From positions 62,001-126,000 of the forward strand of contig MCFE01000065.1 in assembly GCA_002104905.1 (NCBI GenBank): a stretch of DNA of 64,000 bases. The letters are read 5' to 3'. The notes beneath the pieces are model-generated. The model was not told the origin of the DNA, ran no database searches, and saw only the letters and a list, made by a program, of their open reading frames with translations. The stretch comes from Basidiobolus meristosporus CBS 931.73 (lineage: Eukaryota > Fungi > Basidiobolomycota). Below, one piece after another: positions 16,451-50,932 of the stretch (position 1 is its first letter; every line of letters begins with the position of its first letter). Made by a program: the position numbers and the translations under genes.

Positions 16451-17041
16451 ATGAATTGTGATTTGGGTTCAACACTTCCTGTACAAAATTATTACACCTG
16501 GTTTCGTTCTTCATTCTTCATTAGTACTGACCCTCGTCGGCTGGATCTCTCTTTCATATACAACCTTGTAGTCAAGTCCAATTCGAACAGTTCAGGCCTA
16601 GCTTTTCAAGATTTCAAGCGTGTACTTGAGCATTCACTTTGTTTTGGTCTTTATATTTTACTCCCTAGCTCGTCGCCTGACAGTAATAATCCGGAGTCCA
16701 AGTATACCGCACGACAAATTGGATTCGCCCGGGTTGTGACAGACCAAATAAGACTTGCTTATTTGTGCAATCTGAGTATTGTTGAGGAATACAAAGGGCT
16801 GCACGAATGGATGTTCGACTGTGTATTGAGTTTTCCTGAAGTTCCAAAGGTAAAATGGATCGTAAGAACAACTGATCTTAACCATCCTATTTCCTTCTTT
16901 GCTCCCCTGACCCCGCCGCCTACCAGTGATGAAGCTGCCTCTCGCAAACATAAATCCGAAGGGACACCCGACTCTGCGTGTACCCGTAAGCGAAAGCACT
17001 TGGCTGACTCTGCTACGCCCTCTGTAGAAACATGTTTATAA
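16451..17041 (+). CDS. Intronless GNAT-fold protein resembling bacterial small N-acetyltransferases; acetyl-CoA motif degenerate
   Basis: FISTDPRRLDLSFIY...LEHSLCFGLY...RQIGFARVVTD...LAYL matches the common bacterial pattern ISTDKxRLD...SLCFGxY...QVGFARVVTD...AYL. First ATG at 16451. Confidence 0.72.
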   Translation: MNCDLGSTLPVQNYYTWFRSSFFISTDPRRLDLSFIYNLVVKSNSNSSGLAFQDFKRVLEHSLCFGLYILLPSSSPDSNNPESKYTARQIGFARVVTDQIRLAYLCNLSIVEEYKGLHEWMFDCVLSFPEVPKVKWIVRTTDLNHPISFFAPLTPPPTSDEAASRKHKSEGTPDSACTRKRKHLADSATPSVETCL

Positions 17042-17589
17042 GATTTTGACGTTTTTCTCACCGTTTCACATTGTACTCTTTATTTCCACACCATATAGAA
17101 CAGTCACGCAAAGAATGAACCATCTTAATATTAATCTTCGCACATACTATACCACACAGTCATACTGTTCGTCTTTAAATTGCGCTTGTATACTACGCTA
17201 TCATGGATGCATCTCTGGAAGCACAGAATCAAAATTACGCCTTCATTTAAGAAGTAATGACCTTATCCTTAAATCACCACACCCCAATGTAAGCTCGAGA
17301 TAGTTGGGATCTTATTTTGGAATAACACAAAATCTACTTGCACAATTTGCTGCGCACTTTGTCTTGCTTTTTCATACATTTTCTATCGGCGGCCCTGACC
17401 AGATTTGGCCGAATAGTCGCCCTGGTTGATGCCCATTCATTGGAGTAACTCTAATCAGCTTTTGGCAGTACCGCTTTATTAAGAGGGCAGCATATATCGA
17501 AATAACTAGCCAAATTTGAATTTTTTAGGTACAAAATTCACAAGCGTGGGTAATGAAGTATATATATGGAAATTGGCAGGCCGGCTCGT

Positions 17590-19384
17590 TCAGTTAATTC
17601 TATTTTGACCATGATGTTCCCACTCCCTGGCACGAAGAGCAAACTTCTGGATCTTTCCAGTACTTGTCTTGGGGAAATCCTGGACCACCTCTACCCTAGC
17701 GGGACATTTGTAGCCGGCCATGGATTTCTTACAAAACGAGATGATTTCCTCTTCAGTGACCTGTATCCCATCGCGTACTCGGATAAACGCCTTGGGTCTT
17801 TCTCCCCATTTCTCATCAGGTATGGCCACCACAGCAACCTCAAGCACTGCTGGGTGCTCGTTGATGATCTGCTCCACTTCAATTGTCGATATGTTTTCGC
17901 CCCCACTGATGATGATATCCTTCTTACGGTCTCTCAGCTGAATGTAGCCGTCTGGATGCCGCACAGCAATATCTCCAGAGTGGAACCATCCTCCTTTGAA
18001 CGCTTCCTCGGTAGAGGCTGGATCATTGTAGTAGCCCTTCATTACCATTGATCCTCGCATCACAACTTCACCCAGCGTTTTACCATCGAATGGAACATCC
18101 TCCATCTTCGAATTCACCACCCGCGTTTCTTCCGAAACGCAGTAGCTATGCCCTTGACGAGCCAGGATTATGGCCTGCTCATGCTCTGGTAATGACTCCC
18201 ATTCTGGCTTCCAGCGAGATACCAGCGAAGGCCCATAGGTCTCGGTCAATCCGTAGGTGTGTACGGGTATAAGATTTAGCTGCTTCATCCTCCCAATGAG
18301 GTTGGGTGAAGGTGGGGATCCGGCGACGGTAACCTTGACCGGATTCGGTAGTTTGCGAGCCAACGGATGATTCACGATGGATATTTGAACAGTCGGCGCG
18401 CCATTGTAATGGGTCACTTTGTCATTCACTAGTACATTCCATATGTATCCATAGTCGATCTTCTTCACCATCACGTTAGTCCCACCAACGGCAGTCACCG
18501 CCCAGGGGAAAGTCCACCCATTGCAATGAAATAGTGGCAGTGTCCACATCATTACCGATTCGGAGTTCAACTCCGCTTCAATGGAATTGCCCAAAGCGCT
18601 GATATATACCCCGCGATAAGTCAGCATCACGCCCTTTGGACGGCCGGTAGTGCCACTGGTGTACGAAATACTTATGGTGTCGTCCTCGTCGCCAAACAGA
18701 TTCAACTCCTTCCAGCCACGGTTCAACGAGCGGCCCTTCGCAAGAAATTGCTCATAAGGGTCGTCTTGTTTGCCGCTGCTATATACACATATAATCTTCA
18801 ATTTATCTTTCAAGTGCGCAACCAAGTCGTAAGATTCATAGTCCACAAACAGCAGCTTGCTTCCAGAATGATCCAAGATGTACTCAATCTCACTGGGCTT
18901 GAGGCGATAGTTGATCGCCACCATGATCGCTCTCAAACAAGGTATGCCAAAATGCCCCTCAAACAATGCAGGGATATTTGGGGATAGATAGGCTACTCTA
19001 TCACCTGGCTGAATCCCCTCCGCACGTAGTGCGTAGGCCAAGTTATGGACTCTGTCGAGTAGCTCGGTGTATGTGTATGTTAGATCGTCCATTTTTACGG
19101 CAACCTTGTCCGGAAATACGTTCGAGCTACGTTGAAGGAAGTACACAGGGTTCATCTGGGTCTTATTGACCTCTTGCTGCTTGTCGCAAGGAATCACTGT
19201 TTGGTAGGCAAAGGGGTTTAGATATCCAGCGGCACATCGAGCTCATTAACAAAAGGAATTTACCATTGCTAGGAGTATTGGGTTTTACGGGCTCTCCAAC
19301 ACTGGTGCCCAGAGTATTGTGAAGATTCTGGAGACGACGACGGGCAGTGGTTAGTTGGTTATTAGAGCTGAGGGTGTCAGACAT
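17590..19384 (-). CDS. Acyl-CoA synthetase / AMP-binding enzyme, 2 exons
   Basis: ATG at 19384, intron 19197-19263. Motifs SYTSGTTGRPKG, PLFHCNGWTFPW, YGLTETYGP, WFHSGD, DRKKDIIISGGENIS and PKTSTGKIQK are present. Confidence 0.93.
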
Positions 19385-21474: not shown

Positions 21475-22536
21475 ATGAGGTTCGACATCCGAGTGTTACT
21501 TCTGGCTGCTTGTGCTTCTAGCGGGTTAGCTCAGGATAGTGGTGTCTCAGGGGACCTACACCCAATTAACCCAGCATGGACGAAGCAATATGATTTATCC
21601 AAAGTTCCCAAGAAACCGCTGAGGGCTGTTGGATCTGGTGTGTGCAAAAATTCGAATTGTGGGCCTGACGATTGTGACAAGTGCTTCGAATCCTGTGGCA
21701 ACTGCCCAGTTGAGGAGGATGTCTACGGGTGCGGCGCTGGCCAGTGGGCCTTGACATTTGATGACGGTCCATCAGATTACACTGCTCAGCTCCTTGATAT
21801 CCTTGGTGCCGCTAAGGTGAAAGCTACCTTCCTGATGGTCGGCCAGAACGTTGTCAAGTACCCAGAGGTGGTCAAGCGGGCATTCGATGAGGGCCATCAG
21901 ATCTCACAGCACACCTGGTCACACCCGCACTTGATGAGCATCTCCAATGAGCAGATCGTGGCCGAGGTCCGAGCCACCGAGGAAGCCATTTTCAACATCA
22001 CCGGTGCACGAACAGCTTTTATTCGACCCCCTTACGGAGAGGCTGATGATCGAGTCAAAGGAGTGTTCAAGGCCATGGGCTATTACAACTTGCTCTGGAA
22101 CATGGACACCCTGGATTGGGATATTGTTGAGAAGAAGGAAAACCCTGATAATATCATCAGCTCATTCAAAAACGTCTTAGCTAAAGGAACAGACTTGAAT
22201 CCATTCAATAACCCTGGTTACATATCACTTCAGCATGACCTTTATGTCGAAACCGTCAAGCGTGTTCCTTCCATTGAGAAACTTTTGGGGCAGAAAAATT
22301 TCCATTTTGTACTTGCGCACGAATGTATCAATGCATCACCTTACCAGAATAGCGCTCAGGAGGATACAAAAACCGCAACGCCGACAACTAAGCCTCAGCC
22401 ATCCAGCTCGAAGACTGCCTCAGCAACACATGATACTGTCTCTATTCAAGGAGAATCTGGAGCACCAAGACTATCAAAGCCAGGCGCCATGGTCGCGCTC
22501 ATATTATTCATCTATTCTGCTATCTTTTCTTTTTAA
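21475..22536 (+). CDS. CDA: Chitin deacetylase (CE4/NodB), signal peptide, Cys-rich N-module, probable GPI tail; array copy 1
   Basis: Motifs TFDDGP, HTWSHP, RPPYG, DTLDW and LQHD. N-terminal hydrophobic signal, S/T-rich linker and C-terminal hydrophobic stretch. Intronless. Confidence 0.93.
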   Translation: MRFDIRVLLLAACASSGLAQDSGVSGDLHPINPAWTKQYDLSKVPKKPLRAVGSGVCKNSNCGPDDCDKCFESCGNCPVEEDVYGCGAGQWALTFDDGPSDYTAQLLDILGAAKVKATFLMVGQNVVKYPEVVKRAFDEGHQISQHTWSHPHLMSISNEQIVAEVRATEEAIFNITGARTAFIRPPYGEADDRVKGVFKAMGYYNLLWNMDTLDWDIVEKKENPDNIISSFKNVLAKGTDLNPFNNPGYISLQHDLYVETVKRVPSIEKLLGQKNFHFVLAHECINASPYQNSAQEDTKTATPTTKPQPSSSKTASATHDTVSIQGESGAPRLSKPGAMVALILFIYSAIFSF

Positions 22537-22997
22537 ATTGTAATACTTTCACTGGCTAATTATTATTTCGGATACCTATAATTGTACATCCAATATATTA
22601 CTTCTTATAGCCGATTTTAATATATACATAAAGGAGTGTTGCATGAGAAATTTACACTGAGCTGTAGAGTACGAAGTGTACAATGATTAATTGATATACT
22701 TGTCTTCGATAATTAACCAATTGAACAGGAATGGATAGATTGAAATCCTGGAATCTCTTAATCCGGTTTGGATTGTATGCCAAAATGAAGCTTGATCTAT
22801 ACTGAGTTCACAATACCATCTGTGAAATAAATAATTATCTGGGGATGCTCCGAGCCTTAACTTAACACATACAACCGATAGAATCAATATCACTACGTAT
22901 GTTTCGAGCCTCATTAATTTGTACATTTCCCCATTACACTTTCCGGAATATGAGTCTTGATCTGCGTTATTTCTGATGACCAAGCCAAAGAAGTGCT

Positions 22998-23487
22998 TGG
23001 GCCATCACACCCTACTCTGAAACATGATCACCCTGAATTGGGCTAATGTTGAGAAGAAGCAATGCCCGGGCAAGGTCGATGACTCTTCAAAAAGGTATTG
23101 AGTAAGGGGACACACCTGAGCCCATATGAGAGTGTGGGATACATTTCCCCTAACACGATCTTTACATGGAAACCGTCAAACGTGTTCCGAAAATCGAGTT
23201 GCTTTTGGCTCAACATGGGTTCCATTTTGTTCTTGTTCATGGGTGTACCAAGGTACCAAAACGCGCCCGTCAATAACTCAACCAAGGCTTCGCCCAATGC
23301 CCCCACCAGTGCTGCTTCCAAAAATCCTTTCACTAAAGCATCGATATCCATAACCCAGGCAAGAGCTTCTTCACCATCGACTGGGCCAAATTCAAATGCG
23401 CGTATAGCACCTGGTGCCACAAACCTAGAGGAATCCGGCATTGTTGTCAGGCTCACGATTTCTATGGCACTTGGTCTATTAATATAA
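22998..23487 (+). pseudogene. 3'-half chitin deacetylase pseudogene
   Basis: The LLWNMDTLDW region is degraded to ctactcTGAaacatgatcaccctgaattggg, with a frameshift at the LQHD motif. It is followed by a S/T/A-rich, hydrophobic GPI-like tail ending LALGLLI-type ...MALGLLI*. Confidence 0.8.
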
Positions 23488-23754
23488 CCCAATCATAGCT
23501 TCCCAATAGGATTCAAAACGAATTTATCAGATTTATTCACCAGAAACAATAAACCCTGAAAATCAAGAATTAGTAATACACCCAAAATGCTTATTGTTAA
23601 TCACTAGACAAATGTAATTCAGCTCGATGTGCATTGTAAAAGGCAATTTGAGATATGATTCCATGAAGAGTTGGGCATTAACAATTGAGCGCCTAATCGT
23701 ACTTAAACTAGATGTTTCTGAGTCATTCGTTCATCCGAGTCTCCTACTAACCAG

Positions 23755-24828
23755 ATGAAATTCTCCACTATCTCACTCTTATTAACAGTTTGGTGTTCGG
23801 ATGCCTTAACACAAGGGAACTTGAATGACAATTTACTTTACCCCATAAATCCTGACTGGACCGAGCAATATGACCTTTCCGCAGTCCCAAATAAACCTTT
23901 AAGATTGGTTGGGTCTGGGATTTGCAAGAATGCCACTTGTGATGCAGACGATTGCGATCGTTGTTATGAAAGCTGTGGTAACTGTCCGCTTAAAAACGAT
24001 ATTTACGGATGCGAGGCTGGTGAGTGGGCTTTGACCTTTGATGATGGGCCTTCTCCATTTACTGGGGAACTCTTGGATATATTGGCTGCAGCAAAAGTGA
24101 AAGCTACCTTCCTGATGGTCGGCCAGAACGTTGTCAAGTACCCAGAGGTGGTCAAGCGGGCATTCGATGAGGGCCATCAGATCTCACAGCACACCTGGTC
24201 ACACCCGCACTTGATGAGCATCTCCAATGAGCAGATCGTGGCCGAGGTCCGAGCCACCGAGGAAGCCATTTTCAACATCACCGGTGCACGAACAGCTTTT
24301 ATTCGACCCCCTTACGGAGAGGCTGATGATCGAGTCAAAGGAGTGTTCAAGGCCATGGGCTATTACAACTTGCTCTGGAACATGGACACCCTGGACTGGG
24401 ATATTGTTGCCAAGAAACAAGATCCAGACAAGATCATTAGTTCATTCGAAAGCGCACTAACTAAAGGAACTAGCCTAAACCCATTCAGCGACCCAGGCTA
24501 CATCTCACTCCAGCATGATCTTTACGTAGAAACCGTCAAACGTGTTCCGAAAATTGGGGAGCTTCTAGCACAACATAACTTTCACTTTGTACTGGCCCAT
24601 GACTGCATTAATGTTGCGCCATATCAAAGTAACCTCGATGACAACAAGCTCACGAAAATCACTCCACACGAAGCTGGAGAAGACGAAACATCAGTAGCTC
24701 AAGCGAACGGCAATCCAGGATCTAAACCTCCCATTGACGTTCTATCAGCTGCGGTCGATAGCCGGGTAGCACTTGCTGCTCTTAATTGCTTACTTGTAAC
24801 CATCGCTTATGCGCTATTATCCCTTTAA
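23755..24828 (+). CDS. CDA: Chitin deacetylase (CE4), signal peptide plus probable GPI tail; array copy 2
   Basis: The same five CE4 motifs and the CxNxxCxxxDCDxCxESCGNC module. Intronless. Confidence 0.93.
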   Translation: MKFSTISLLLTVWCSDALTQGNLNDNLLYPINPDWTEQYDLSAVPNKPLRLVGSGICKNATCDADDCDRCYESCGNCPLKNDIYGCEAGEWALTFDDGPSPFTGELLDILAAAKVKATFLMVGQNVVKYPEVVKRAFDEGHQISQHTWSHPHLMSISNEQIVAEVRATEEAIFNITGARTAFIRPPYGEADDRVKGVFKAMGYYNLLWNMDTLDWDIVAKKQDPDKIISSFESALTKGTSLNPFSDPGYISLQHDLYVETVKRVPKIGELLAQHNFHFVLAHDCINVAPYQSNLDDNKLTKITPHEAGEDETSVAQANGNPGSKPPIDVLSAAVDSRVALAALNCLLVTIAYALLSL

Positions 24829-25139
24829 TCAGCTCCCTTGGACTATATTTGCAGGTATCAGTTTGAATCGGGAGTAGTTAGAACTGCCGACCCCTTGGGG
24901 ATTGGCAATATTGTTTCATAAAATGATAGATTATATGTTGATTTAAATAAATTGCCAGGTGCCTCATTAGACTACCACGCGAGTTATATCCCATATAGAG
25001 TACTTTTATCATACACACTACTCCTCATCATAGTTAGGCAACTTAGTTGAGACAGTGTAATCTCACTGAATAGGCACTAAATAGAAATATGAGGAATCCA
25101 CAATCGATGTATGCTGTTGTCGATTAAACTCCAGTTTGA

Positions 25140-25720
25140 ACGTCACTTATGGCACCGTTCCAGTTGAACTCAGCCTTGATATTTGATGATCTTCACATGA
25201 TACTTACTAGCTTCTTGACATTCTGGGCGCTGCTAAAGTCATGGACAGCTTCCTGACGGTCGGTCAGAATGCTGTCAAGTATCCAGAGGCGGTCAAGCGG
25301 GCATTTGATGAGGGCCATCAGATCTCACAGCACATCTGGTCATGCCCGCATTTGATGAGGAGATCGTGTCCGAGGTCCGAGCCACCAAAGAAGGCATTTT
25401 CAATTTCACAGGTGCATAGCAGCCTTCATTGGATCCTCTTACGGAGAGGCTGATGACAGAGTCAAAGGAGCGTTCAAGGAGTGTTCAAGGCCATGGGCCA
25501 TTACACCCTACTCTGAAACATGATCACCCTGAATTGGGTTAATGTTGAGAAGAAGCAATGCCCGGGCAAGGTCGATGACTCTTCAAAAAGGTATTGAGTA
25601 AGGGGACACACCTGAGCCCATATGAGAGTGTGGGATACATTTCCCCTAACACGATCTTTACATGGAAACCGTCAAACGTGTTCCGAAAATCGAGTTGTTT
25701 TTGGTTCAATGTAATTTTTG
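25140..25720 (+). pseudogene. Chitin deacetylase pseudogene (catalytic core, many stops and indels)
   Basis: Recognisable LDILGAAKV..FL.VGQN.VKYPE.VKRAFDEGHQISQH. It carries a deletion after HLM, an 11-bp tandem duplication (gagcgttcaag/gagtgttcaag), a TGA replacing Trp and a frameshift at LQHD. Confidence 0.85.
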
Positions 25721-26670
25721 TACATTTGCGTTAATCTTCCACCTCTCAAAAATCGCAGCCAGTAGTGAACTCTATACTTATTCCACCATGGTATCAAAAA
25801 GTACAGCTGTCACCAGGAGCCAGGAACCTATTTACAATACGAGCAACGACGGCTAAGCTAACATAGAGGCCGCCTACAAGTGGGTCAAATTACCCTTCGA
25901 TTGGCATTACAGTGGTCTGCTTGGAATGTAGTTAATAGTGAACCACGCATCAAGAATAAATCATTTCTTTCGACAGCTACATTACCATGCATTCAATGCT
26001 CCAAAGGTCCTGAGAATTCATGCAATGGACTACCAGAGTTATTTGGTCTCATCACGAAGTAAATATGGGGATGAGCTGACTGGTATGACGTAGTAGCCAT
26101 GAGACTCTTGTCGAGGGAAGGTCAGGAGGATGTGACAGAGTTTGATTAGCAAGCAACCAGGTAGTTCCCCTTAATTTAGCTATGCACAGATACGCTTACA
26201 GCTGTCGATCAATGAAACCGGCGTTAAGGCTAAGAATTCAAGTAGCGGTCACACCTAGCCCAGAATAGAACACTGAAATATCTCCGATTAACATCGATGT
26301 ACCCTTACATGTGTGAGATGCCCCAATTTTCATTGGAAAGCAGGAGTGAATATAGTTGGGCAGAAGAGCTCGGTTGGACAGTTAGAAATTAATATTTGAC
26401 ACATCCTCACTTGGTGGCTGGTAATGTACCCCTCAAGATAGGTTGCGTCCCAGCCTCGCGCGTGAATTCTCTATGCCGACTCGGTGGAAGGAATTCTTGA
26501 GCATGCAGGCAATCAAGTATAGAAACATTAATTTGGTCTGTTTCTCAGCGCAACGATCCCCCCAACAAGTAACTCGAATAAAAGAGGCGAAGCTGTCACT
26601 GCTCCTCATCATTCAGTGTCTTCATCTAGATTTTCTACTCTTTCGCACTTCTGTAAATCACGGTCGTAAT

Positions 26671-27732
26671 ATGAGATTTCTTTCCCTTAGATGGTCTCTT
26701 ACCTTGCTCAGCCTCGCACGATTCACTCGATCCCAGGAGGCTCCTTCGAGTGAGTTGGCCAAAGTAAATCCCCAATGGATACAACAGTACGATTTCTCCA
26801 AGGTGCCGAACATCGCGCCCAAAAAAGTGGGCTCAGGCATTTGTTCCAACAGCGCTTGTGGTCCTGGCGATTGCGATAAATGCTGGGAAAGCTGTGGCAA
26901 CTGTGCATTGTCGGATGACGTCTACGGTTGCACGGCTGGTAAATGGGCATTGTCATTCGATGATGGCCCATCAAACTACACAATGCAACTTCTGGATATC
27001 CTTGCTGCAGCACAGGTGAAAGCTACTTTCCTAATGATTGGCTCGCAAGTAGTCCAGTTCCCGGATGCAGTGAAGAGGGCTTTCAACGAGGGCCACCAGA
27101 TCGCTTCGCACTCATGGTCTCATCCGCACTTGATGTCGCTCACCAATGAGCAAATTGTGGCAGAGGTCAAAACTACCGAGGATGCTATCATGAACATTAC
27201 TGGTGTCAAGCCCGCGTACATCCGACCACCATATGGCGAAGCTGATGACCGTGTCAAGGCAATTTTTAAGGCTATGGGGTACAGTAACTTGCTATGGAAC
27301 ATGGATACCTTGGACTGGGACATTGTGGCCAAAAAGGAGAGCCCAACCTTAATCCTCAACTCGTTCTCTGCAGCACTGGCCAACGGTACATCGTTGAACG
27401 CACACAACGACCCCGGGTTTATCTCGTTGCAACATGATATTTACATAGACACTGTCAAGGAAGTGCCATCGATCGAAAAATTGTTACTAGCACATAACTT
27501 CAAGTTTGTACTTGCCCATGAATGCAACAATCTATCTCCATATCAAGGGAACATTACTTCCACCAATACCACATCAAGCGCCGCAAATAGCACAAGCTCC
27601 GGTTCAGCCGCCTCAACGAGCCTGCCAGTCTCCGCCGTCGCTTTACCGGCCACTTCTGACTCCACTACGGCATATCAATGCTCTTTAGTTTCAATTATAA
27701 TTACATTGGGTGTCATTTTATCTGGTATATAA
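26671..27732 (+). CDS. CDA: Chitin deacetylase (CE4), signal peptide plus probable GPI tail; array copy 3
   Basis: Likely start ATG 26671 (MRFLSLRWSLTLLSLARF). Motifs SFDDGP, HSWSHP, RPPYG, DTLDW and LQHD, then a S/T-rich and hydrophobic C-terminus. Confidence 0.92.
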   Translation: MRFLSLRWSLTLLSLARFTRSQEAPSSELAKVNPQWIQQYDFSKVPNIAPKKVGSGICSNSACGPGDCDKCWESCGNCALSDDVYGCTAGKWALSFDDGPSNYTMQLLDILAAAQVKATFLMIGSQVVQFPDAVKRAFNEGHQIASHSWSHPHLMSLTNEQIVAEVKTTEDAIMNITGVKPAYIRPPYGEADDRVKAIFKAMGYSNLLWNMDTLDWDIVAKKESPTLILNSFSAALANGTSLNAHNDPGFISLQHDIYIDTVKEVPSIEKLLLAHNFKFVLAHECNNLSPYQGNITSTNTTSSAANSTSSGSAASTSLPVSAVALPATSDSTTAYQCSLVSIIITLGVILSGI

Positions 27733-38126: not shown

Positions 38127-40509
38127 GTATTTACAATATGAGAGGTAAATAGGGAAGAGAAGACGAAGGGGATACAATTATATACTGGCAATTATATACA
38201 GGTGACTAACGGATTATTTGTTGGATACCCTCCAGTTAGGTATGGAATCGATCTATCATCAGGAAAACGATCGTATCTGACCCTATTACCATATATGAGT
38301 GCCGAATTCCATGGCGGAAAATCTTTTGTTTCGAGGAATAATCCAAGTCACAGGCTGGGATTCACTGAATTAAATCCGTAATCGGTGTTGAAATTAGCCG
38401 TGAGGAAAAGCACTTTCTGCTGATTCATATCCAACGTCTGCTTTGCACCTACTTATTTGAATTGCTGGAGTGTTTGGTTTGACCAAGGAGGGACCACCGT
38501 ATGGTGTGGTAGTAGGCTTAGTCTTTGAAACGATGTAGGGCTTGGTTGCGGAGTGGGCATTTCATGGTCATGAATGTCGCATACGACGCGTATGCATTGA
38601 TGGAGAATTTGCCTCCGAAATCCAAGCAGAAATTACCAGTTGAAATTCATCAGATTTTTCAAATATGGAAAATGTTGGGTGGACGAAGTAAAAAAATCTT
38701 GGTAATGCCGATAGGGTGATTCGATGATTTGTTTGGAAGAGTGGCTATCCTACCCCATCAATATTAACTAAACCATACAGAGGATAACCTAGCGCAACCA
38801 TCTTGCCTTCTGGAAGACCAGGCATTCACACATTTTCTCATGTAATCTGGCGTATCTTTGATGGCAGTGTCGCGAAACTTTGTTTGTGACATGATATTGG
38901 TATTGAGTGAGCAAATTTTGCCAAGATTGAAGTCATATCGCTACGTAATGATCACTTAAGAGTCAGCACTGGCACATGTGAAAAGTCCTACTTTGGGATA
39001 GCTTCCATTTTGGTGTAATTCTAGTGATGGTTTCACTGGAATTCGATACAATACATGATGATCTGTACTGGGGATCTTCACTTCTCTAATTGGATAATAT
39101 TTGCTGTATCGAAGGGTGGATTGGCCATAACATTCTTATGAGAACCGTGCATGGACAAAGTGGTTACTCCGGCTATAGAACAGTGCACAGTTGAGTGAAG
39201 AAGGCCAATGATGCCAATTTAGAAATACCACGCGTACTTATCACACTTGGCATCGGCGGTATGGAATGCTACCTTAGATGCCTGCTTTCAACTGCCATGT
39301 TCAATTTGGAGAATACAGTTTTTGGATTCTTGGTTAAACTATTCGAAGCATGCATAAACGTACCTTGGTGCTTTGATCATATTGTGAGAGCTCATTGGAG
39401 TACAGTAGCATATTTAACTGATGACAGCGCCTGAAACACTTACGTGTTTGACACAATTTATGCCATGAAGTTGGCAAGGGAAGCGTTGCCTCACAAACAT
39501 TACTCGAGAATGCTGTGTTACAGGAGCACAACGCCCATTACGGCTAGCCCAACAAATACCCCGCAAAATTTACATTCACTTTGATGTAACAGTGCGATAT
39601 TGATGCCAGATCAAGATATCCTTTTCTAGTGGCAATTACAGGAAACAACGTACCCAGATACACAAGAATACTGAATATTGAAATTTGGTTATCAAAACGA
39701 TCAATAAAGGATTAGTAACAACTTCTGATAATCATAAGCAATATGCAAATATCCGTTTTTAGAATAACCCTATGGTCACCATGTTGAGAATGATTAGTAC
39801 TATTTCGGATGATACTTCGATTGCATAGCAAATCAATCTGTTAGAAATTGACAGGTTGGTCCAAGTATTTGTTGGAATAATTCGAACACAAAAGATATTC
39901 AGCAACTTCTAATAGATCTCAGGCCAACTTTAAAGGATAACGGTGAAACTAAAGAATCAAAGCTTGAAAAGCAGGAGCAATAGTAATACTAGGCGTAAAT
40001 GTGCATCGCCTTATCCAAAACCTTCACAACGGATCTGAGATACAGAAGTTTGATAATGTAGGGAAGAAACATGGGTACACTCAAGAGAGCATGCCTGTAG
40101 GGAGCTGGAGGAAGGCCTGAAGCCATAGAGTCAAATTAGTAAGCAACAAACTTATCAAGCATGGTGTGGTCTCATGAGAGCTGTAGTCATGATGTTCTTA
40201 ACTTTACACTCAATATGCTACATACATCAAGCACATTGACTTAATAAATCAAATAGTGGAAACATCAGTTATTCTATATCAAAGTAAGTCATTTCCAAAT
40301 CCCTACTTCATTAGCTTTTTATACACAGATAGACAATAATGTGCATACTAATACAAGAGTAATGAGGTTTTGGATGCTTAGGAATGCTCTATCAATTCTA
40401 GTATTTAGTTGAGCACCTAATTACTCATGTATCTTTCATAAAGCTCTATATGATATTCATTAATTTTTGGATCGATGAGAGTGCTTGAAGTTATCAAACC
40501 TGTCCAAAA

Positions 40510-40858
40510 TGTTGTAAGAGTTTTGGAGATATTGGAAGTGACTGGGAGAACAAGTGGATTATGTGGTTTTCAATTGATGATTTATTGAATGTAAAAGTAG
40601 TATTTATACTTTTGCATGGTCTTGGAGAAACAAACACGTAGAGCATGTTTAGGAAGGTCCCAAGAACATGTGTGCAAAGTTTGGGGCCGTTTGGACAACT
40701 TTGAGATATTTCATGTTCTGGGTGCCTGATGTTTTGGTGAAAGTATTCGAAGTAAATCCCCGACAAGGAATTTGGCCAGAATTCGGTAAGAGTTGTAGAC
40801 TATGATCTGAGTGGCTAAGTTAGGTGAATATTTGGGTGCAATTACGAAATTTACAACA
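40510..40858 (-). mobile_element. Solo LTR (349 bp) of an integrase-type LTR retrotransposon
   Basis: Termini TGTTGTAA (40510-17) and TTACAACA (40851-58); flanking 5-mers CAAAA/CAAAG. TATAAATA and AATAAA lie on the minus strand. It is the reverse complement of 50400-50747 at roughly 85-90% identity. Confidence 0.85.
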
Positions 40859-41039
40859 CAAAGACCCCAGGCAGTGCACGCAACTTTCTGAGACCTTCCT
40901 CAAAGTATCCATACAATTTTTACAAAGTTTACACAAGTACGAATACATTGTGTACATTCAACAAATCAGTAAGTGAAAAACCACACTTCTAAATACTTCC
41001 ACTTTCTTCTCATTATCACGATAATCCATTCAGATCACA
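40859..41039 (+). mobile_element. 3' half of an older diverged LTR of the same family, hosting the 40510-40858 insertion (5' part about 40480-40509)
   Basis: gaccttcctcaaagtatccatac and tacattcaacaaatcagtaagtgaaaaaccaca align collinearly with the young LTR (gaccttcctaaacatgctctac; tacattcaataaatcatcaattgaaaaccaca). Confidence 0.7.
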
Positions 41040-42488
41040 GTCTTACTTTCTGCATTTGATTCCTGTAGGTGGCCCATCCAGTAGAACGATGTTTTCCAAA
41101 GGTTACGTTGCAAAATAAGAGTACTTATTTTTGTCATCCTCAAATTCAAAACCTTCAGCTCCCTCGTTGGCTTGTTTCCTGATGTAAGCCTTTACGGAAA
41201 TAGGATTATTATTGCTGGTGTAAGCGGACTTGGTACTACGGTAAGAGAATAATAACAGACATGATGGTGCTTTGTAATTTCGTGATTCTTACTCCATAAT
41301 GATATGTGACACTTCACCTGTTTGTCAATCTTGATAGAATGATTTCCAATAGTACGTTACAATATGAGCCTAATGGAACTTTTCAAGTGGGGAAGCATTT
41401 TTGCATGATTCCCTATGGACTGGGCTGGGGTCTACCTGTAATATCAACACATCAAAATTATGATCCAAGTTGTAAGCAGAGAGCTCCTTGAAGCAATATA
41501 CAAGCGAGCTATTGGTCAGCATGGTGTACCTTGAATAAGGCTTGTAGGAGTGAGCCTTACCGCCTCGGTTGCAGATAGCTCGATGCTGTACAGTTAGCGT
41601 AATACATATCGAAAACCCTACGCTGCCACGGGCTACTGTCATAACCCTGGTACCTCTTTCTGTTAGTGGGGCTAATTACGCCAACCTAAGTTTAATGCTA
41701 TTGTAGAGTACAAGTTGATGGGATGGCCTGCTCTTGTCTTGCTTCCAAGTCAATGACGTCGTCATGTGAGCGAGAGTGCTCGTTAAACTGTGTATATATG
41801 TACAAATGAAGTTTCTCGATGTAATCCAAGTAAAAAGTGGATGTGGGAATAAACCAATCCTCAGAAACATCAACAACACCAGCGGTATTACTAATCTATT
41901 GCTCACATACAAAACTCCATCTAGTTAAATTGACTTTCATTCGATTGCATGTTATCTATTGCCCCAAGTAAAATAAGCTAACTGTTTTATTCTTAGATTT
42001 GCGACCGTGGTTTAAGCTACGTACGCTTTCCAAAACCGTATCTGACTAAGGAAATGTGGCTTCTTATGAGGAAGGATACGGATCAAAGATAGACTCAGAA
42101 AGCTTGTTTTACCTATACATCTAGTACATTTACGCACTATTTCGTAAAAACAAGCTCGATCTCATGCGTTGTGCATTCATTGATGACTGTAGTCTAGAGT
42201 TTACACGGCTCATGGTGTATAACAAAGCCTATAGCCCCCAAGCCTCGGTCTGCTTGGTAGTAGCCTAATTTAAAGACGATACGTGGCAGTAGCCAAGCTA
42301 AAAGCCAGATGATGTCACTCAGAAGGTCCCCTTTATACTTTACTCTGGAAAACCCACCACTGGAAACCGATATTGTTAGTGACAGGCGATGTATGGCGAG
42401 AATTAGCCACGTTATAAATACCTTGGCCCGCATGGGAGATCAAGTATTCCAAGTTTTCGACATAGGCTACAATTTACTATCTACTTAA

Positions 42489-42950
42489 TTGAATATGAGA
42501 TTTTCTCTTCTCACAATAGTGTTGATTGGCTGTGCTATCTCTACAGCCCAGGGAGCTATAAGTCACGATGGTAGTTGTGGAAAAGGAAATGAATGCGCTT
42601 CCGGCTCTTGTTGCTCGGAGTGGGGCTACTGTGGAACAGGACCAGCATTCTGCAACTCCAATTCTAAAGGCGGAGGTGAAGAACCCGACAGCGAACATTC
42701 TGATGAACATCAGCCCACCAAGGCTCCTGGAGGGGACAACTCTGGAAGCAACCCACAGCAGGCAACGGCAACGGCAACCTCCACCACCTCCACATCGACC
42801 GCTGGCTCAAAAACCACCTCCGAAAACAAACCGACTGGTACCAACACCGGGGGTCATGCAAGTGAAGTCTCGTCCATCTCCCCAGTTTCGGCATACCTGA
42901 TCGCTCTTGGGCTTACTTTGCACCTGGTTGGCCAAACCTATTATGGATGA
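42489..42950 (+). CDS. Small secreted chitin-binding (hevein/CBM18) protein with S/T-rich stalk and probable GPI signal
   Basis: Signal peptide, then SHDGSCGKGNECASGSCCSEWGYCGTGPAFC (hevein consensus CCSxxGYCG), a low-complexity stalk and a hydrophobic C-terminus. Confidence 0.88.
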   Translation: MNMRFSLLTIVLIGCAISTAQGAISHDGSCGKGNECASGSCCSEWGYCGTGPAFCNSNSKGGGEEPDSEHSDEHQPTKAPGGDNSGSNPQQATATATSTTSTSTAGSKTTSENKPTGTNTGGHASEVSSISPVSAYLIALGLTLHLVGQTYYG

Positions 42951-43389
42951 ACATACGACAATGTCGAGAGACTACCACTTGCATGAATACAGGATATTTT
43001 GATTGCCAGCCAAAATCAGGGCTGCCCGCATTGCAGGAACCAGGGCAGAATAAAAGTCAGACTAACCATTAGATAGATGAAACAACTTGCTAGATGAATT
43101 GCTTTCCCATCATCAAGTAACCAGCTATTTGTGGCTCATTATATGCTAAATATCTGAAATAAACCCACAGTTACAGGAATTCATCTGGATCGCGCTACTT
43201 ACAACCGACTTCGGCACACCAAATTGCGAAGGATCAACATACAAACTAAAGTAATTATTTTTATTACATTGTCGGTCCTATGAATCACCGCTCAGCCTTA
43301 ATGTGGTTTAGATGGCATTACTACTGTCCTTCAAATATGGAAAATGTGTTTTGATGCAGCAAACCTCAAAAACCCCCTTGGCGATGGAA

Positions 43390-45175
43390 TTAGAGCTTTG
43401 ACTTGGCCATCTTGTCCCTGGCCTCCTGGGCTTCCTTCAAAAGTCTCCTCTGAATCTTCCCGGCGGGGCTTTTGGGTATAACGTTGGTGAATTCAATACC
43501 TCCCCTTATCTTTTTGTGTGGTGCCACTTGGCTATTTACAAAGTCGAGGATTTCAGACTTGAGTTTTTCTGATGGTTCAACATTTACTTGAAGGACGACG
43601 AAAGCCTTTGGCACCTCAGTGGCTTGACTAGGGTCTTGAATACCTATCACGGCTGCATCAGCTACACAGTTGTGGTCCACTAGCTTCGCCTCCAACTCCG
43701 CAGGTGCAACCTGGAATCCCTTATACTTTATCAACTCCTTCAAGCGGTCAGTAATATACCAGAAGCCGTTGGGATCGACCTTTCCAACATCTCCGGTGTG
43801 GAAAAACCCATCCTTGTCGATAGAGTCTGCCGTAGCTTTTGCGTTTTTGTAGTATCCACGCATGATGTCGGGTCCTCTCAGCCATATCTCTCCCTCTTGA
43901 TTATAGCCTAACATCTTTCCGGTATTCGGATCGACGACCTTCGCCTCCATTCCTGGCATTAGTTGACCCACAGAGCCATAATGAATGCAACCATGTGGGA
44001 ATGAAAATCCTGTCGGTGAGGTTTCGGTCAGTCCATACCCCTCAACGATAGTTATCTTGTATTTTCGGAACAACCCTTCGGTAAGTTCCTTTCCCAAGGG
44101 TGCTGCGCCGGAGTTCATTTTCTTTAAGCTGCTCAGATCGAACTTAGCCACAAGTGGATGTTTCAGCAGCCCTAATGCAATAGGTGGCACAATGACCAAT
44201 TTGGTAATCTTGTACCTCTCAATGGCGTATAGGAATTTCTCCATGTCGAATCGACTTAGAATTACGATCTTCGATCCCTCCTGAGTTAGGGGTGCATGAA
44301 GGCAGCAACACAATCCATACATATGGTAAAACGGCAGTACCCCAGACAAGGTACTTATATCAGGCTCAAGGAATTGTATCTGTTGACAAACGCTGGAAAT
44401 GATGTTTCTGTGGGTTGTTTCAACGCCTTTCGGGTGTCCTATACAGTGGATGAGATTAGAATAGCTCATAATATACAAACACCATTTTCGGCTACCTGAT
44501 GTCCCTGATGAATAGCATATGTAAGCTGTACTCTCCGGGTTCACTTTTGGTCTTTGGAATGGTGTCTTCTCAAACATCTGGTTGATTGTGTGAATACCAG
44601 GATCTGCTTGGTCCTCGAAGACAACCAGGTTACAGGTTTTTTCCAGGTTTGCTAGCTTGATTGCCGCTATCGCTGTGGGAAGCAAAACAACACTTGTTAC
44701 CATAACTTTGGGCTCCGTCTGGGATATCTGGCGAGCAAGCTCAGTAGCCGTATAGTTTGGATTGGCTGTCGTAACAGCTCCGCCTTGTGATAGAAGGTTA
44801 GTCTGCGCTTGGTGAACAAGGCAATAGAAGCATCGACTTACCAGTGACAATCGTTCCAAATAGCACGGTCGAGTATAGAATCTACAGAGCATACGTGTTA
44901 TTGCACTGTATTACGAACACCTTGCATCGAATAATACGTACGTGATTTGGAGAGAATAGAGCTAGTCGATCGCCGGCTTTGAAGTGAAATAGTTTCGTCA
45001 AGTTACCGGCAAATCTTAGGGAATTCTCCTGGATGTCACCAAACGTTATGCGTTTATCGGTCTCCGCATCAATTATGACAACCTGATCTCTTGGTACTCT
45101 TGGGTTGTCAAAGAGGAAAGTGTAGATATCTTCACGAGGAATTTCGTTTGGAGTATACAAGGATTTAAAAAGCAT
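43390..45175 (-). CDS. 4-coumarate:CoA ligase-like / luciferase-like acyl-CoA synthetase, peroxisomal (PTS1), multi-exon
   Basis: Motifs CYSSGTSG..KGV, LPFYHMYGL, GYGLTETSP, GEIWLRGPDIMRGY, FHTGD and DRLKELIKYKGFQVAPAELE. C-terminal SKL*. Exon 1 spans 45175-44942. Confidence 0.93.
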
Positions 45176-47018
45176 CTTCAGAGAGGAAGAGGAATAATGT
45201 TGATAAGATCGGATGGCCAGTGTTTATTTATATATATTGGCCGGTTGACCCCTTACGATCAATCATTCACTCCAGTACTCTAATCGGTGAGGAGTTGGTT
45301 TAAATTCCCACTATTCCCACTCAATTGACCACAGACGTTTCATATTAGTAAGAAGGTATTTCATTATTCACATACTCAACAATCTCTCTCAAGATCAAAA
45401 GATAACTTCGTAGGCGCAGATAACAACCCAGATATCCCAATGATCATTTTCATCCTTTTAGTACCACGAGCACACCATGCTATTTAGTGGGTGTTCACAC
45501 ATCAAGTGGGCAATATAGTCATTTGTGGTAGGTTTCCAACGTATCTTCAGATTTCCAGATTGCTCATGCATCATGGTAGATTTGGTATAGTTGATCTACT
45601 TGACCATAACGCGCTTGATATGACCTACCCAACCAAAGGCCGTGTGACCGTCTCGTGATGTTCTTGAGATGACATCCTCCATCGCGGGCCAATTGGACAA
45701 ATGATTTCCAGGCAAGAATATGACGAAGCTGATGACCAGTACGAGGGATGATTAGCTGCATGATAATCCTTCCATAGCTGCCGTTTGCAGTGTCTAGCTA
45801 TGTCGACCATGACCGGCATTCCTCAACAACTGGAGTGTTGTGAAAAGTCGCATCTTAAGTCGCCACACACATCGCCGGATAGTAATTATTGTGAACAACG
45901 CATCCACTATGCAGTTACAGCGAAAGATCACACCTGAAAGAAAAGATTGGATGCCTGCCGCTGCCTGCAGATCGGTAGTGTTTTGGGATCAATAGCTGTG
46001 AGAGTTTGCGTACGCGCCATGTGTAATTGACATGAAACAATGGTAATCCCTAGGACTCGAGACCATTGTGCTGTTTTCATGGTCTAAATCACAGCGATTT
46101 CCGTATCTTACTACCGGGTAATATGCCCCACCAATACTCCAGCTTTTGAGGTATGATTAATTACATGATAAAATCTAATTAATCAGCAGAATTTGGGTCG
46201 TAAATGCTCATATGAAGCCATATTATGGATAAATATCTTCCGTCCGGATTTTTATATACCCATCAGTGCATTAGGAATGTTGCGTGAATTACTCATTCCT
46301 CTCTCAACACTGCTGTTTGCGCCACTTTACTAGACAAATAAGCAGACTTCGTGGGACCAACCTGGTCTCTGTCTACTTGAATATCGAACAATGTGTTTCA
46401 TTAATCCTTTGTTAAAATGCTGTCTCTATTCAGCGGGGAACAATAACAACATATCTCACAAAAATGAGCTTTGATTGGCCAAGGTTCCATCCTCTGCTCC
46501 AACTTTACCTCAATAGCGCCAATCGTTTTTTAGAACTCCGTTCCCCGGTACTTCCTACATGGTTTCGTTGTCAGCTCACTTCATGTTTGACTATACACTA
46601 ACTGCTACATTACTCCGTTTCTCGGCATTGGCGAAACCGACTGGATAGGTACATCTTTGTTTCACAAGTCACTTTGCACTGAAGTCAGAAGTATTTACGT
46701 GAAATTTTATTATGTGGGATATATATACCCAATTGCAATCTACTAGTGTGATAATCGTAAGTTCAAGAGAAATCGACAGCCACAGACTGCCTCCCGGGGG
46801 CCTCCATTCGCCGATTTTTGGCCGAAATGAGAGGATTCACTTGGGAGCAAACCGGGAGGGTGCGTAGAAATTAAAATGCAGCTTTAGATGAAAAGATTGG
46901 TCAAAAATATTGATGGATTAGGCTTTAGCTTGAACAGGACTCGGCTGGAACAAAATATATGAATACGCAGATGTAGAAAACTACAAGACAGGTCGTGCAA
47001 AATGGCTGCAGTACCAAT

Positions 47019-48689
47019 CTACTTCGAGTAGCTCTTATCCAAGGCATCTCGGTTGAGCAAAGTTTGACGCTCGCTATCTTCGTTCAATGTTGAATCGCTA
47101 TCAAGAACCTCTTCCTCTACAGATCTGTGCGAGTTGACATATGAAATGAGATTGAGTGTTAAGCCACCAATAAACCCAATCAGTGCAAGCGAAAGGAAGA
47201 ACATCTCCATGGCGGTATAGCTCCGGGTAATAATCTGGATCTTGCCCACAATGAGAGGAACTCCGGAAATGGAGAGATTGAAGAAAATCCCTGCGATTCC
47301 AAATGCTGTGCCCAATTGCTTCTCCTTGACAATGCACGGAATACAAGGCCAGACTGCAGACGCGAATAATGAATATGTGATTCCTAGAATGGTGTATCCA
47401 AGGACTGGAGTAATCTCTGTAAGCCCTAGAATAGCATGCACAATAACGATCAAAGCTGCACTAAATGTCATTATAGGCCCATGGTATCCGATACGGTCTA
47501 CAAGCAAACCACAAAGTGGTGAGCCAATAGAAGATATAATGTTGGGTATGGACATGACTACAGAGTATGCGTTAGAGAATATGCGGTGAAGAAAGCCTAT
47601 AGCGTGTCACTTACCTGCCCCAGCACTCTGGGAGTCTCCAGGATACCATTTGTACTGAAGGAAATCAGATGAAATGTACAAGAAAGGTTGAACAGAGCCT
47701 AATAACGATAATTAATATCATAAGGGAAGAATGCGAATGGTGTTTGATATCGCAAATACGTACCATACAAAGCGACGATGAGCAGACAAATTAACCAGAA
47801 AGAGAGGCGCAATTTCAATATGTCTTTAACAGATAGCTCGTCCTCACCGCTGCAAGCTTCCAGAGGAACACCAGCCCGTTGCCGTGCTTGAGGAGTATCG
47901 AGACGGATCAACACAAATGCGCAAAATCCAGAGAATAGGCAAACAAGGAATCCTATCCAGCTCACTGTGATAACATCTGTAAGATTGCAAATCCAAGGGG
48001 ATAGTAGTGCGTCGGCTGCTGAGCCCCATCTTCCGACCGTCAAATTCAGAGCCAGGGCAAATGCAAGTAAGGAGCCACGGAACCAATCAGTAGTAACCTT
48101 CCCTTGAACAATCTCTAAACTACCACAACCAATTCCCAAAAAACAGCGGCCCACGCACATAAGCCAAAATGCGCGAGCTGTTACGCCAATGGAAAATAGA
48201 GCTTGCCCCAGGCACATGAGGATAGAAAAGAGGACCAACGCAAAGGAAGACCCGTACTTATCCAAAAGTAGACCACCAAAGATGGGAAATACTACGTTAG
48301 GCAAGGAAGTAACCATGAACAACACGCTCACTTGATATTGCCAGTTTACAGGATCGGCACCGAGGTGATCGCGCAATTGTATGCTCAAAACCTAACATGA
48401 AGAACATTCATGAGCATTTTAGTGAACATTACACCATGTATGCGAATTTTGACTTACCCCGGGAATTTCATAGCTGGAGATGATTCGCGGATAAGTGAAG
48501 AACCGGTCAGTATTAAAAAGATAAATGGCCCAGGAGAAAGCAATCTCACCAAAAGTACTGCCCAAGCATGAAAGCGCAAGCTAAAAACAGGATTACCCAG
48601 CTGTACGCAGATTGCTTTGGCCTTTGTGACATTTCAGTTTGCGAGTCATTTGGAGCAGTGCTCGTAACAATATCCTCGTTGGGAGACAT
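47019..48689 (-). CDS. Major facilitator superfamily transporter, MFSD1-like, multi-exon
   Basis: Motifs SLPNVVFPIFGGLLLDKYG, GRCFLGIG.GSLEI....TTDWF, GLLVDRIG and WPCIPCIVKEKQLGTAFG. Likely start MSPNEDI at 48689. Confidence 0.88.
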
Positions 48690-50399
48690 GTGAGCGCGGT
48701 TGACAGGATCTGTTGAAAAGGAATGAGATATAGCAGAGCCAACAACTAGTAAAGTAGAATTCGAACGGTCGAAGGTTCCAAAGAAGGTAAATAAAAGAAT
48801 GGTAAATCCAAGGAATAGAATGAACGCCAATGAACAATTTAACAAGATAGGCCAATAAAGTATAAATGGGTGAGATCTGGTTGGATTTTAAATTTTTGAA
48901 TCACCACTTGAAAAAAATGGCAAACAGTGCGTCAAAATGTTGATCGATCGAATGAAAAGTGTGTGGATGGGAATAACCTGGCTTGGTGCAGCGTTGAGTA
49001 GCAAGATAAAGTAAAGATCACTCATTGATCTGAGATTCAAGGGTAATGGTTTCATTGATCAACAGCCACCTGTCTGAGCAAGCTGAAACCCACAGAGGAT
49101 ACTGAGAGTCGAAGTAAAAGACGTAATCGACACAACCTCCCTAAAGTATCCAGAGCCTCTATCAACCACAGTATGCGTCAGAGTTGCTCTATCGAGTCTG
49201 CAAGGCAGCCGTTACACCAGAGGTTTCCGTTAGTTGGGAATTCAGGTTCACCCAGCATCAGCCTAGTAAAGCCTTTCAGCTTCATTTGTATGGTCACATT
49301 TATTTTTAAACTCTAGCAATGGCCCATTTTGGTAAAAGCAACCCCTTCGATAGATCATAACGTCAACTAAGTAGATCGCATCTTTACTATCTAGACATGT
49401 CTATAGATATATTTGGAGAGGCATACGCTATGAGTCAGATTATTGAGTAACGATGATTCTTTGGTTTCATTCAAAAGACGTGGGCCTGATTATTTTGTGC
49501 CCTAGCAATTGAAGGGCTCTTTCTGACAGAAAACAAGAGTCACCGCTTTGAATATATTAAGAAGTGTAGCCGAAATGGAGGGGCCTAGCCTGTAGCCATC
49601 TTGTAATGATCGACTGGGCATCATTATGGACGTTGGCAAGTCTGGCAATATATGGAAACGGTATACATTGGATGCTGGGAGCAGCTTAAGGGGTACAACT
49701 GTGTACTCCACCAGAGTAACACTCTCTGTTACCGCCAATGCATGAATAATGAGGCACAGAACATATATCGTACCCAAGCACCTCATCGTAGTATTCAGTC
49801 ATTCTTACTAAGCACTTTAAACATTCATCAATATGATACAACGCCAGCAAAGGCAAATTTGGTACTACGGTCAGTCAGGTTTGTATGGGGATCATCTCAC
49901 GAGCCACGCGTATTCGATTATGTGGGCTTGACCCTGAAATAGATAACAAATGATATCCAATACCTTCAAAAAGTTTATGGTGCTCGTAAATGTTGCAATA
50001 AAATTTAGCGCCCTGTAATCTCTATCAAGGGTACTTGAATATCAATTTTCTGTGTGGAGCAACATAACATTTCAGAATGCTGAGAACAGCTACATGCGAA
50101 ACCTGGACCATCCAAATACCTTGGAGATGTGAATTCAAATGCTCAGTTTGAGTCTGGCCCAACATTGTAAAGATAGCCAGTAGCCAATGATCACTACATT
50201 CCTAAATGAATTTCCAACACCATAATGAGAGTATTTACGTGATATTGGTCATTTTAGCTTGGGACCAGATTAAGTTATGATTTCAGAGTAGATGGAGTGT
50301 TTTGGTTTTCGCAAGAGACCTTAGTAAAGGGTTCCCTACCTAAATTTCTATGCTTAAGAAGGCCTGGAAGTTATCAAGATTTTTCGAACTCGTCCAATA

Positions 50400-50747
50400 T
50401 GTTGTAAATTTCTTAAATACACCTAAATATTCACTTAACTTAGTCACTTAGATCATAGTCTACAACTCTTACAGAATTCGGGCTAAATTCCTTGTCGGGA
50501 TTTACTTAAAGATTTTTCATGTTTTAGGTACCTGGTGTTTTGGTGAAAATATTTCAAATTGTCCAAACAGCCCCAAGCTTTGTACATATGGTCTTGGGAC
50601 CCTCCTAAACATGTTCTACGTGTTTATTTTGCCAAGACCATGCAAAAGTATAAATACTACTTTTACATTCAATAAATCATCAAGTGAGAACCACATAATC
50701 TACTTGCTCTCCCAGTCACTTCCAATATCTCCAAAACTCTTACAGCA
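50400..50747 (+). mobile_element. Solo LTR (348 bp), same family as 40510-40858
   Basis: Termini TGTTGTAA (50400-07) and TTACAGCA (50740-47); flanking 5-mers CAATA/CAAAA. Internal TATAAATA (about 50648) and AATAAA (about 50671). Confidence 0.85.
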
Positions 50748-50932
50748 CAAAAGTCCCTAAGCTTTGCACACCGCTTCCTGGGATCTTTATTAAAGCATTC
50801 TTATCATTAGTTTCATGAAGTTCTCCTGAAAGTACAAATACTTGATTTGAACACAATAAATTAACAAGTGAATATGATGCAATTCTTCTAGCTCTCCAAA
50901 TCATTTCCAATACTCCCTAGAATCCTGGAGCA
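50748..50932 (+). mobile_element. 3' half of an older diverged LTR of the same family, hosting the 50400-50747 insertion (5' part about 50340-50399)
   Basis: caaaagtccctaagctttgcaca, gaaagtacaaatact, caataaattaacaagtga and gctctccaaatcatttccaatactcc align in order with the second half of the young LTR. Confidence 0.72.

Follow-up and report, generated by a model that had tools for sequence, protein, structure and literature searches.

The data indicate that a Ty1/copia retrotransposon of the early-diverging fungus Basidiobolus meristosporus has repeatedly integrated at one and the same nucleotide position of older, related long terminal repeats (LTRs). The window analysed here is a stretch of 64,000 nt (GCA_002104905.1), to which coordinates refer unless a locus number precedes them; positions inside the LTR are those of a copia LTR profile of about 348 positions. 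The window contains two solo LTRs, hereafter inserts A and B, each lying within a diverged LTR-like sequence (hosts A and B). Both entered their host at profile positions 165-169, in the sequence GTC^CAAAC, and a third event at this position was found at another B. meristosporus locus (L004). The three insertions are independent, and positions 165-169 are a genuine recurrent integration hot spot of the family. As a whole, the observations are best explained by the independent entry of copia elements, now solo LTRs, at the same site of older LTR-like hosts, with a feature of the U3 region of the LTR presumably guiding the integrase, a reading to which we give a probability of about 0.72.

The structure of inserts A and B was read directly (Table 1). 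A first-pass annotation of the window had recognised two solo LTRs there, with TG..CA-type ends and near-perfect 5-bp duplications, and this description stands, the family now being identified as Ty1/copia. Both inserts start with TGTTGTAA and end with TTACA(A/G)CA, and together with the L004 insert they display the attributes of solo LTRs, i.e. TG..CA ends, short inverted termini, no coding interior and a flanking duplication, the two copies of which match at four of five bases in each of the three cases. Inserts A and B are 84% identical overall (BLAST), and their arms are complementary (92% over 192 nt and 90% over 100 nt). What surrounds them is LTR-like as well: the right flanks of both inserts are homologous to LTR positions 165-348 at about 62% identity (z=13.6 for A, z=23.9 for B), and this homology starts exactly at the CAAA of the duplication. 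On the left, homology is short, about 25-60 nt, and reaches significance only when anchored (z 2.3-4.2; empirical p <3e-4 to 0.016 in an anchored test with 3000 random 60-mers of the window as comparison set). Each insert was then removed in silico, one copy of the duplication being retained. Against a profile made from 15 further copies of the LTR, the excised hosts aligned through the junction, host B over positions 147-347 (E 1e-28) and host A over positions 149-293 (E 7e-15). The hosts are thus collinear with the LTR across the junction and, as had been claimed, host homology continues to the LTR 3' end.

The survey for further same-site insertions covered about 218 kb of non-redundant DNA: the window, a metagenome contig of 3.3 kb (L008) and about 151 kb of other B. 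meristosporus loci, which had been reached by way of paralogous genes and of a single gag protein. Two loci of B. ranarum were handled separately. Taking the B. meristosporus genome to be about 89 Mb, the survey amounts to about 0.25% of it. Sixteen complete LTRs and seven LTR-in-LTR interruptions were found, and three of the latter fall at positions 165-169, namely those of inserts A and B and that of a solo LTR in L004 (18766-19114, minus strand). The L004 copy splits the 3' LTR of an element, here called element X (L004:17039-19298), into halves at 18613-18765 and 19115-19298, with CAAGC and CAAAC as duplications. The 5' LTR of element X (17039-17385) is uninterrupted at the site and reads ..ATCCAAGCAGCCC.., and uninterrupted copies of the site were found in old and young LTRs. 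The reuse of the site, which the first-pass annotation had put forward from the two window copies, therefore extends to a third event.

Several lines of evidence establish that the three events are separate and that their coincidence is meaningful: (i), the three hosts are only 58-62% identical pairwise and the three inserts 89-92%; for the window pair the values are 59% for host A vs host B and 92% for insert A vs insert B (3' halves). (ii), insertion is independent of orientation, B running in the same direction as its host while A and the L004 copy run opposite to theirs. (iii), the sequence beyond the hosts is unrelated (left flanks of A vs B, z 0.9). (iv), insertion was exact to the nucleotide despite hosts only about 60% alike. 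The proposal of two independent integrations at the same nucleotides of older related LTRs is thus upheld, and the three events together show what characterises site-directed integration, independent recurrence at a fixed nucleotide position in either orientation. In simulations, three of seven events at one position had a probability of 2.9e-4 when events were uniform over the LTR and of 1.9e-3 when they were confined to positions 140-274, and the probability of at least one new event at a pre-specified site among five further events was about 0.014-0.036. More generally, seven of 16 insertions lie in LTR sequence, which accounts for 3.7% of the DNA surveyed (p 8e-7, or 5e-4 with a neutral target fraction of 10%, both values being soft since the sample was partly chosen via a transposable-element protein). 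All seven LTR-in-LTR events lie at positions of about 140-274, that is, from U3 to just past the TATA box, and further copies are inserted in copia gag, integrase and reverse transcriptase (RT) sequence, in another repeat and in unrelated DNA. The hot spot is thus a preference within a wider tendency to nest into copia sequence, not a rule. Of the earlier label "self-targeting", the recurrent hot spot survives, but as a description of where the family goes in general the term is too strong.

As to mechanism, each insertion is of the integrase type: the TG..CA ends are complete, and the 5 bp duplicated at the flanks are a pentamer of which intact LTRs have one copy. As the TATA box follows about 80 bp further downstream, the hot spot belongs to U3, and a U3 feature would fix the position at which the integrase acts, whatever the orientation of the incoming element. 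The most probable such feature is a host DNA-binding factor on the block CCCCAAACTTTGCACACATG (profile 171-195), which lies immediately 3' of the site and is among the best conserved across diverged LTRs; such an arrangement would resemble Sap1 and Tf1 (see below). In that case the LTR might attract its own family incidentally, through the factor's site that it bears. We tentatively suggest, as a possibility to which we give rather less than even odds, that the integrase is steered to one nucleotide of resident LTRs by a U3-bound host protein or by an LTR-end-like sequence, each LTR becoming the next landing pad. Targeting through RNA polymerase III (Pol III) or tRNA genes was considered and rejected: no tRNA or Rfam RNA gene was found in the window and no tRNA in eight longer Basidiobolus loci (the Rfam run being of the window only).

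A number of points weigh against the interpretation of guided same-site entry. The survey is small and part of it was chosen via a gag protein. The hot spot is defined by just three events, each with one mismatch in its duplication, and most copies are off-site, three of the 16 complete LTRs lying at positions 165-169. No common motif was seen at the non-LTR targets, the 3' flanks of those elements not having been recovered. The conservation peak beside the site is modest, and the predicted DNA fold or hairpin at the site is no better than that of shuffled sequences (z 0.43). Finally, the 5' half of the window hosts could not be demonstrated: no significant host match to LTR positions 1-140 was obtained with the young LTR, with a second family ("fam2", L011:14240-14587) or with the 15-copy profile, and a possible further 5' block of host B near 50321-50354 was not significant. 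The hosts are LTR-related, as the first-pass annotation had it, but in calling them "older copies of their own LTR" it goes further than the evidence; on the available alignments hosts A and B, about 60% identical to the young LTR, may be either ancient representatives of the family or sequences of a sister family. A possible relic of an LTR 3' end was also seen upstream of host A, at 40240-40267 (region about 40200-40330; profile 269-296, E 1.5, not significant); if real, it would make locus A an older LTR pile.

The best-surviving alternative to guided entry through a bound factor is that the hot spot is intrinsic to the DNA, local structure or an LTR-end-like sequence being favoured by the integrase with no protein tether. 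A flip-prone segment of U3 (see below), which appears to have flipped more than once, is bounded by an inverted repeat about 10 bp to the 5' side of the site, and the site itself sits inside the loop of a 7-bp palindrome, CAAAGTT..AACTTTG bracketing it. In addition, the bases next to the cut, GTTGTC, are similar to the end of the LTR, TGTTGTA, GTTGT being shared with the LTR 5' end, and a study of plant LTR elements describes a weak palindrome preference (PMC6911290). While this is plausible, the fold prediction just mentioned (z 0.43), the loss of the small palindrome from window hosts A and B and the want of a clear shared motif at non-LTR targets rather argue that an intrinsic hot spot is unlikely.

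We consider it less probable again that there is no site specificity at all, the three same-position events being coincidence and ascertainment superimposed on a build-up of the family in its own LTRs by neutral survival or by targeting of heterochromatin or of open chromatin at U3. Nesting is indeed widespread, with four LTR-in-LTR events elsewhere (about 140, 198, 221 and 274) and insertions also in copia gag, integrase and RT sequence, and the first two cases were noticed because they coincided. However, the simulated probability of such a coincidence is 3e-4 to 2e-3, the third case was independent and came to light with the site already fixed beforehand (p about 0.014-0.036), and all three events are exact to the nucleotide in hosts about 60% alike.

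The weakest alternative, in which one nested ancestor was duplicated or spread as a composite LTR by retrotransposition or gene conversion and its insert was later inverted via the 8-bp terminal inverted repeats, can draw on the 56-bp flip described below, by which short inverted repeats do drive inversions in this family, and on inserts A and B being mutual closest relatives just 10 kb apart, but it is very improbable because the hosts are so much more diverged than the inserts (59% vs 92%), the orientations differ, the flanks outside the hosts are unrelated (z 0.9), element X of L004 carries an insert in its 3' LTR and none in its 5' LTR, and gene conversion requires much higher host identity and cannot alter orientation. 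Equal divergence of host and insert, as one duplicated nest would leave, had been named in the first-pass annotation as the outcome that would undo its proposal; the values of 58-62% vs 89-92% exclude it.

Table 1. Features of the two same-site insertions, of their hosts and of the off-site LTR-in-LTR events (window coordinates unless a locus is given)
Feature	Position	Strand	Description
Insert A	40510..40858	minus	349-bp solo LTR, copia; common (type I) orientation of central segment; nhmmer profile 1-348, E 4e-116
Insert B	50400..50747	plus	348-bp solo LTR, same copia family; central segment inverted (type II)
Left target-site duplication of A	40505..40509		CAAAA, read directly; corresponds to the lone CAAAC at profile 165-169 of intact LTRs
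Right target-site duplication of A	40859..40863		CAAAG, read directly; LTR alignment of host A right flank starts here
Left target-site duplication of B	50395..50399		CAATA, read directly
Right target-site duplication of B	50748..50752		CAAAA, read directly; LTR alignment of host B right flank starts here
Host A, left part	40475..40509	plus	Short LTR-like stretch ending in GTCCAAAA; profile about 144-169; weak alone, collinear after insert removal
Host A, right part	40859..41033	plus	Diverged LTR 3' half, profile 165 to about 346; 58-60% identical to young copies
Host B, left part	50377..50399	plus	LTR-like, profile 147-169
Host B, right part	50748..50932	plus	Diverged LTR 3' half to ..GGAGCA end; 59-67% identical to young copies
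Hot-spot pentamer within B	50564..50568	plus	Uninterrupted CAAAC, profile 165-169
Hot-spot pentamer within A	40689-40693	opposite to that in B	Equivalent of the pentamer in B
Motif at hot spot			GTCCAAAC, then CCCCAAACTTTGCACA
TATA box of B	50649..50656	plus	TATAAATA; conserved block across LTRs; ~80 bp downstream of hot spot
AATAAA of B	50671-50676		In 3' third of element, as is the TATA box
Central segment of A	40702..40758		Edges form an imperfect inverted repeat; common orientation
Central segment of B	50500..50555		56-bp internal inversion vs insert A and most other copies; rarer form
Off-site LTR-in-LTR event	L011:15222-15570		Profile about 140
Off-site LTR-in-LTR event	L011		Profile about 194-198; "fam2" LTR; roughly GTTGG duplication
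Off-site LTR-in-LTR event	L006:2639		Profile about 221; one side only
Off-site LTR-in-LTR event			Profile about 274; element X into older LTR; one side only

Judged by its sequence relationships, the family to which the window elements belong is an abundant Basidiobolus Ty1/copia retrotransposon, of which they are solo LTRs; recombination between the two LTRs removed the internal part of each, leaving the solo LTR. All the B. meristosporus loci sampled, L005 excepted, contain the LTR, which over its full length is 77-87% identical to the copies in the window. The 5' LTRs of elements are found at L001:17304, L002:18799, L007:7682(-) and L009:11400/12142, and both LTRs of element X are present in L004. 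In the B. meristosporus copies a conserved stretch resembling a primer-binding site, GGTTATGAGCCCC, directly follows the 5' LTR and is itself followed by copia gag, and the purine-rich GAGTGGGAG stands just before the 3' LTR. Pfam domains found in the family are Retrotran_gag_2, DUF4219, Pol_BBD, gag_pre-integrs and SH3_retrovirus (integrase SH3-like), then RVT_2; the first two were identified at L007:6915-7478(-) (E 7e-23 for Retrotran_gag_2), and RVT_2 adjoins the 3' LTR in L011. The order gag, protease, integrase, RVT_2, with integrase upstream of RT, was read from the related metagenome contig L008, where a 570-amino-acid product contains gag, Pol_BBD and gag_pre-integrs and the following open reading frame (ORF) contains SH3_retrovirus then RVT_2; the rve core was not recovered in an intact ORF. 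A linker of about 120 amino acids separates the integrase SH3-like domain from RT in the Basidiobolus element.

Contig L008, which comes from European Nucleotide Archive metagenome assembly ERZ27274739, shows that this copia family, or else a near relative of it (gag 85% identical), occurs in an environmental sample. Its positions 1-720 run from the 3' end of copia pol through one LTR to gag, an order that points to a tandem or circular element or, alternatively, to a collapse in the assembly. A word-indexed protein search for other copies with LTR-internal ORFs or gag gave no matches, nor did a metagenome scan with a 29-nt conserved LTR pattern. Six ORFs of the window were likewise without an identical counterpart in an exact look-up.

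The comparison of inserts A and B also uncovered a rearrangement that the first-pass annotation had overlooked. Their 56-57-bp centres form a direct repeat (84%) within an otherwise inverted pair, which means that one of the two copies holds an internal inversion, and this copy is B. The segment lies in U3, with an imperfect inverted repeat, AGAATATTTTCA..TGAAAATTCT, at its borders. The inverted form was seen in three copies, i.e. insert B, L006:3469-3815 and L009:12142-12478, and in a tree of the remaining LTR sequence these do not group together, insert B being sister to insert A (branch supports are moderate). The tree suggests that the segment has flipped recurrently via its inverted repeats rather than once in a single subfamily. 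A deletion of about 16 bp inside the same segment is common to L007:7351-7682 and L004:18613-18765 and marks a subfamily.

Genes for an AMP-binding enzyme, for an MFS transporter and for a chitin-binding protein lie in the 9.5 kb between inserts A and B. With ordinary genes between them, the inserts are not two ends of one element but distinct loci; a 10-kb DIRS-like element with inverted-repeat ends was accordingly rejected, these three genes lying inside it and RT, integrase and recombinase being absent. The best protein matches of the window AMP-binding ORF are Basidiobolus paralogues. At the L004 locus, B. ranarum (L012:14080-18884 vs L004:14142-20194) shares the order INTS7, prefoldin, trypsin, AMP-binding and SSF, and similarity is lost where the copia nest starts; synteny stops before the nest, leaving no clean empty site.

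Other repeats were observed in the window and in the sampled loci. Tandem gene-sized direct repeats occupy 21475-27732 of the window, with a spacing of 2.3-2.9 kb, units 67-100% identical and three long plus-strand ORFs of 353-429 amino acids, and at 8552-8791 a 24-bp period is present in seven in-register copies within an ORF and gives a peptide repeat rich in proline, glutamine and tyrosine. A different repeat family (L007:50-4686; L003:5860-6600; L011:14650-15080) has an end that begins with a G run followed by AGACA.TCACCA.CAGGTGAAATC; two long RVT_1 ORFs lie near it in L007. One copy of this poly-G-end repeat abuts the copia LTR at profile position about 137 (L011:14649); B. ranarum has a related junction at about 140 (L012:18661). 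Specific targeting of the copia LTR by the poly-G-end repeat was rejected, one of about six distinct B. meristosporus termini lying in an LTR. A 153-amino-acid protein with no Pfam match is encoded at L003:2984-3445 and L002:21089-21550 (95% identical), a few kb from a copia LTR in each case, and probably belongs to another repeat, and a DDE_Tnp_4 transposase is encoded at L009:19318-19968.

Tethered integration is already known from Ty1, Ty3, Ty5 and Tf1, and comparison with these systems helps to locate the present case. The closest parallel is with Tf1 of Schizosaccharomyces pombe, where Sap1 binds preferentially within LTRs and directs Tf1 integration to single nucleotides (PMC7175516); nucleotide-specific integration beside the site of a DNA-binding protein is the shared feature, as is the promoter-proximal targeting by Tf1 at genes transcribed by RNA polymerase II (PMC7175516). 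However, Tf1 is a Ty3/gypsy element that goes mainly to gene promoters, whereas the Basidiobolus element is a copia, its recurrent site is inside resident LTRs and its guiding factor is hypothetical. Ty3, targeted through TFIIIB, is similar in its repeated nucleotide-precise landing, in its stacks of solo LTRs in either orientation and in the safe-haven reading of its behaviour, but the reference point in Basidiobolus is the U3 of an LTR and not a Pol III start site. Ty1 and Ty5 of budding yeast belong to the same superfamily as the Basidiobolus element. The integrase of Ty5 is tethered through Sir4. A short C-terminal region of the Ty1 integrase binds a host protein, AC40 (PMC7459421). By analogy, the linker between integrase and RT of the Basidiobolus element could serve as a tethering region. 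Unlike the latter, Ty1 uses a broad periodic window and Ty5 is regional, and neither is known to have a single-site hot spot in its own LTR. The plant "autoinsertions" (Jedlicka et al. 2019, PMC6911290) show that some LTR-retrotransposon families prefer older copies of their own family and that target choice is non-random, at least in the accessible part of that study; there, in contrast, the 3' untranslated region is preferred, LTRs are not commonly targeted, gypsy exceeds copia and a single-nucleotide hot spot is not among the reported features (PMC6911290). Our literature search yielded no report of a copia family with a nucleotide-precise hot spot inside related LTRs, in any organism, early-diverging fungi included.

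Targeted integration is what lets retrotransposons survive in compact genomes. To our knowledge, the well-worked cases come from two yeasts and a slime mould. A copia family of an early-diverging fungus that reuses one nucleotide position in related LTRs would offer a new model of integrase guidance. Same-site nesting also explains stacks of LTRs that complicate genome assembly and annotation. If the hot spot holds genome-wide, the conserved block next to it provides a concrete candidate for a binding site and, should each LTR indeed serve as the landing pad of the next, the resident LTRs would form a self-renewing safe haven for the family.

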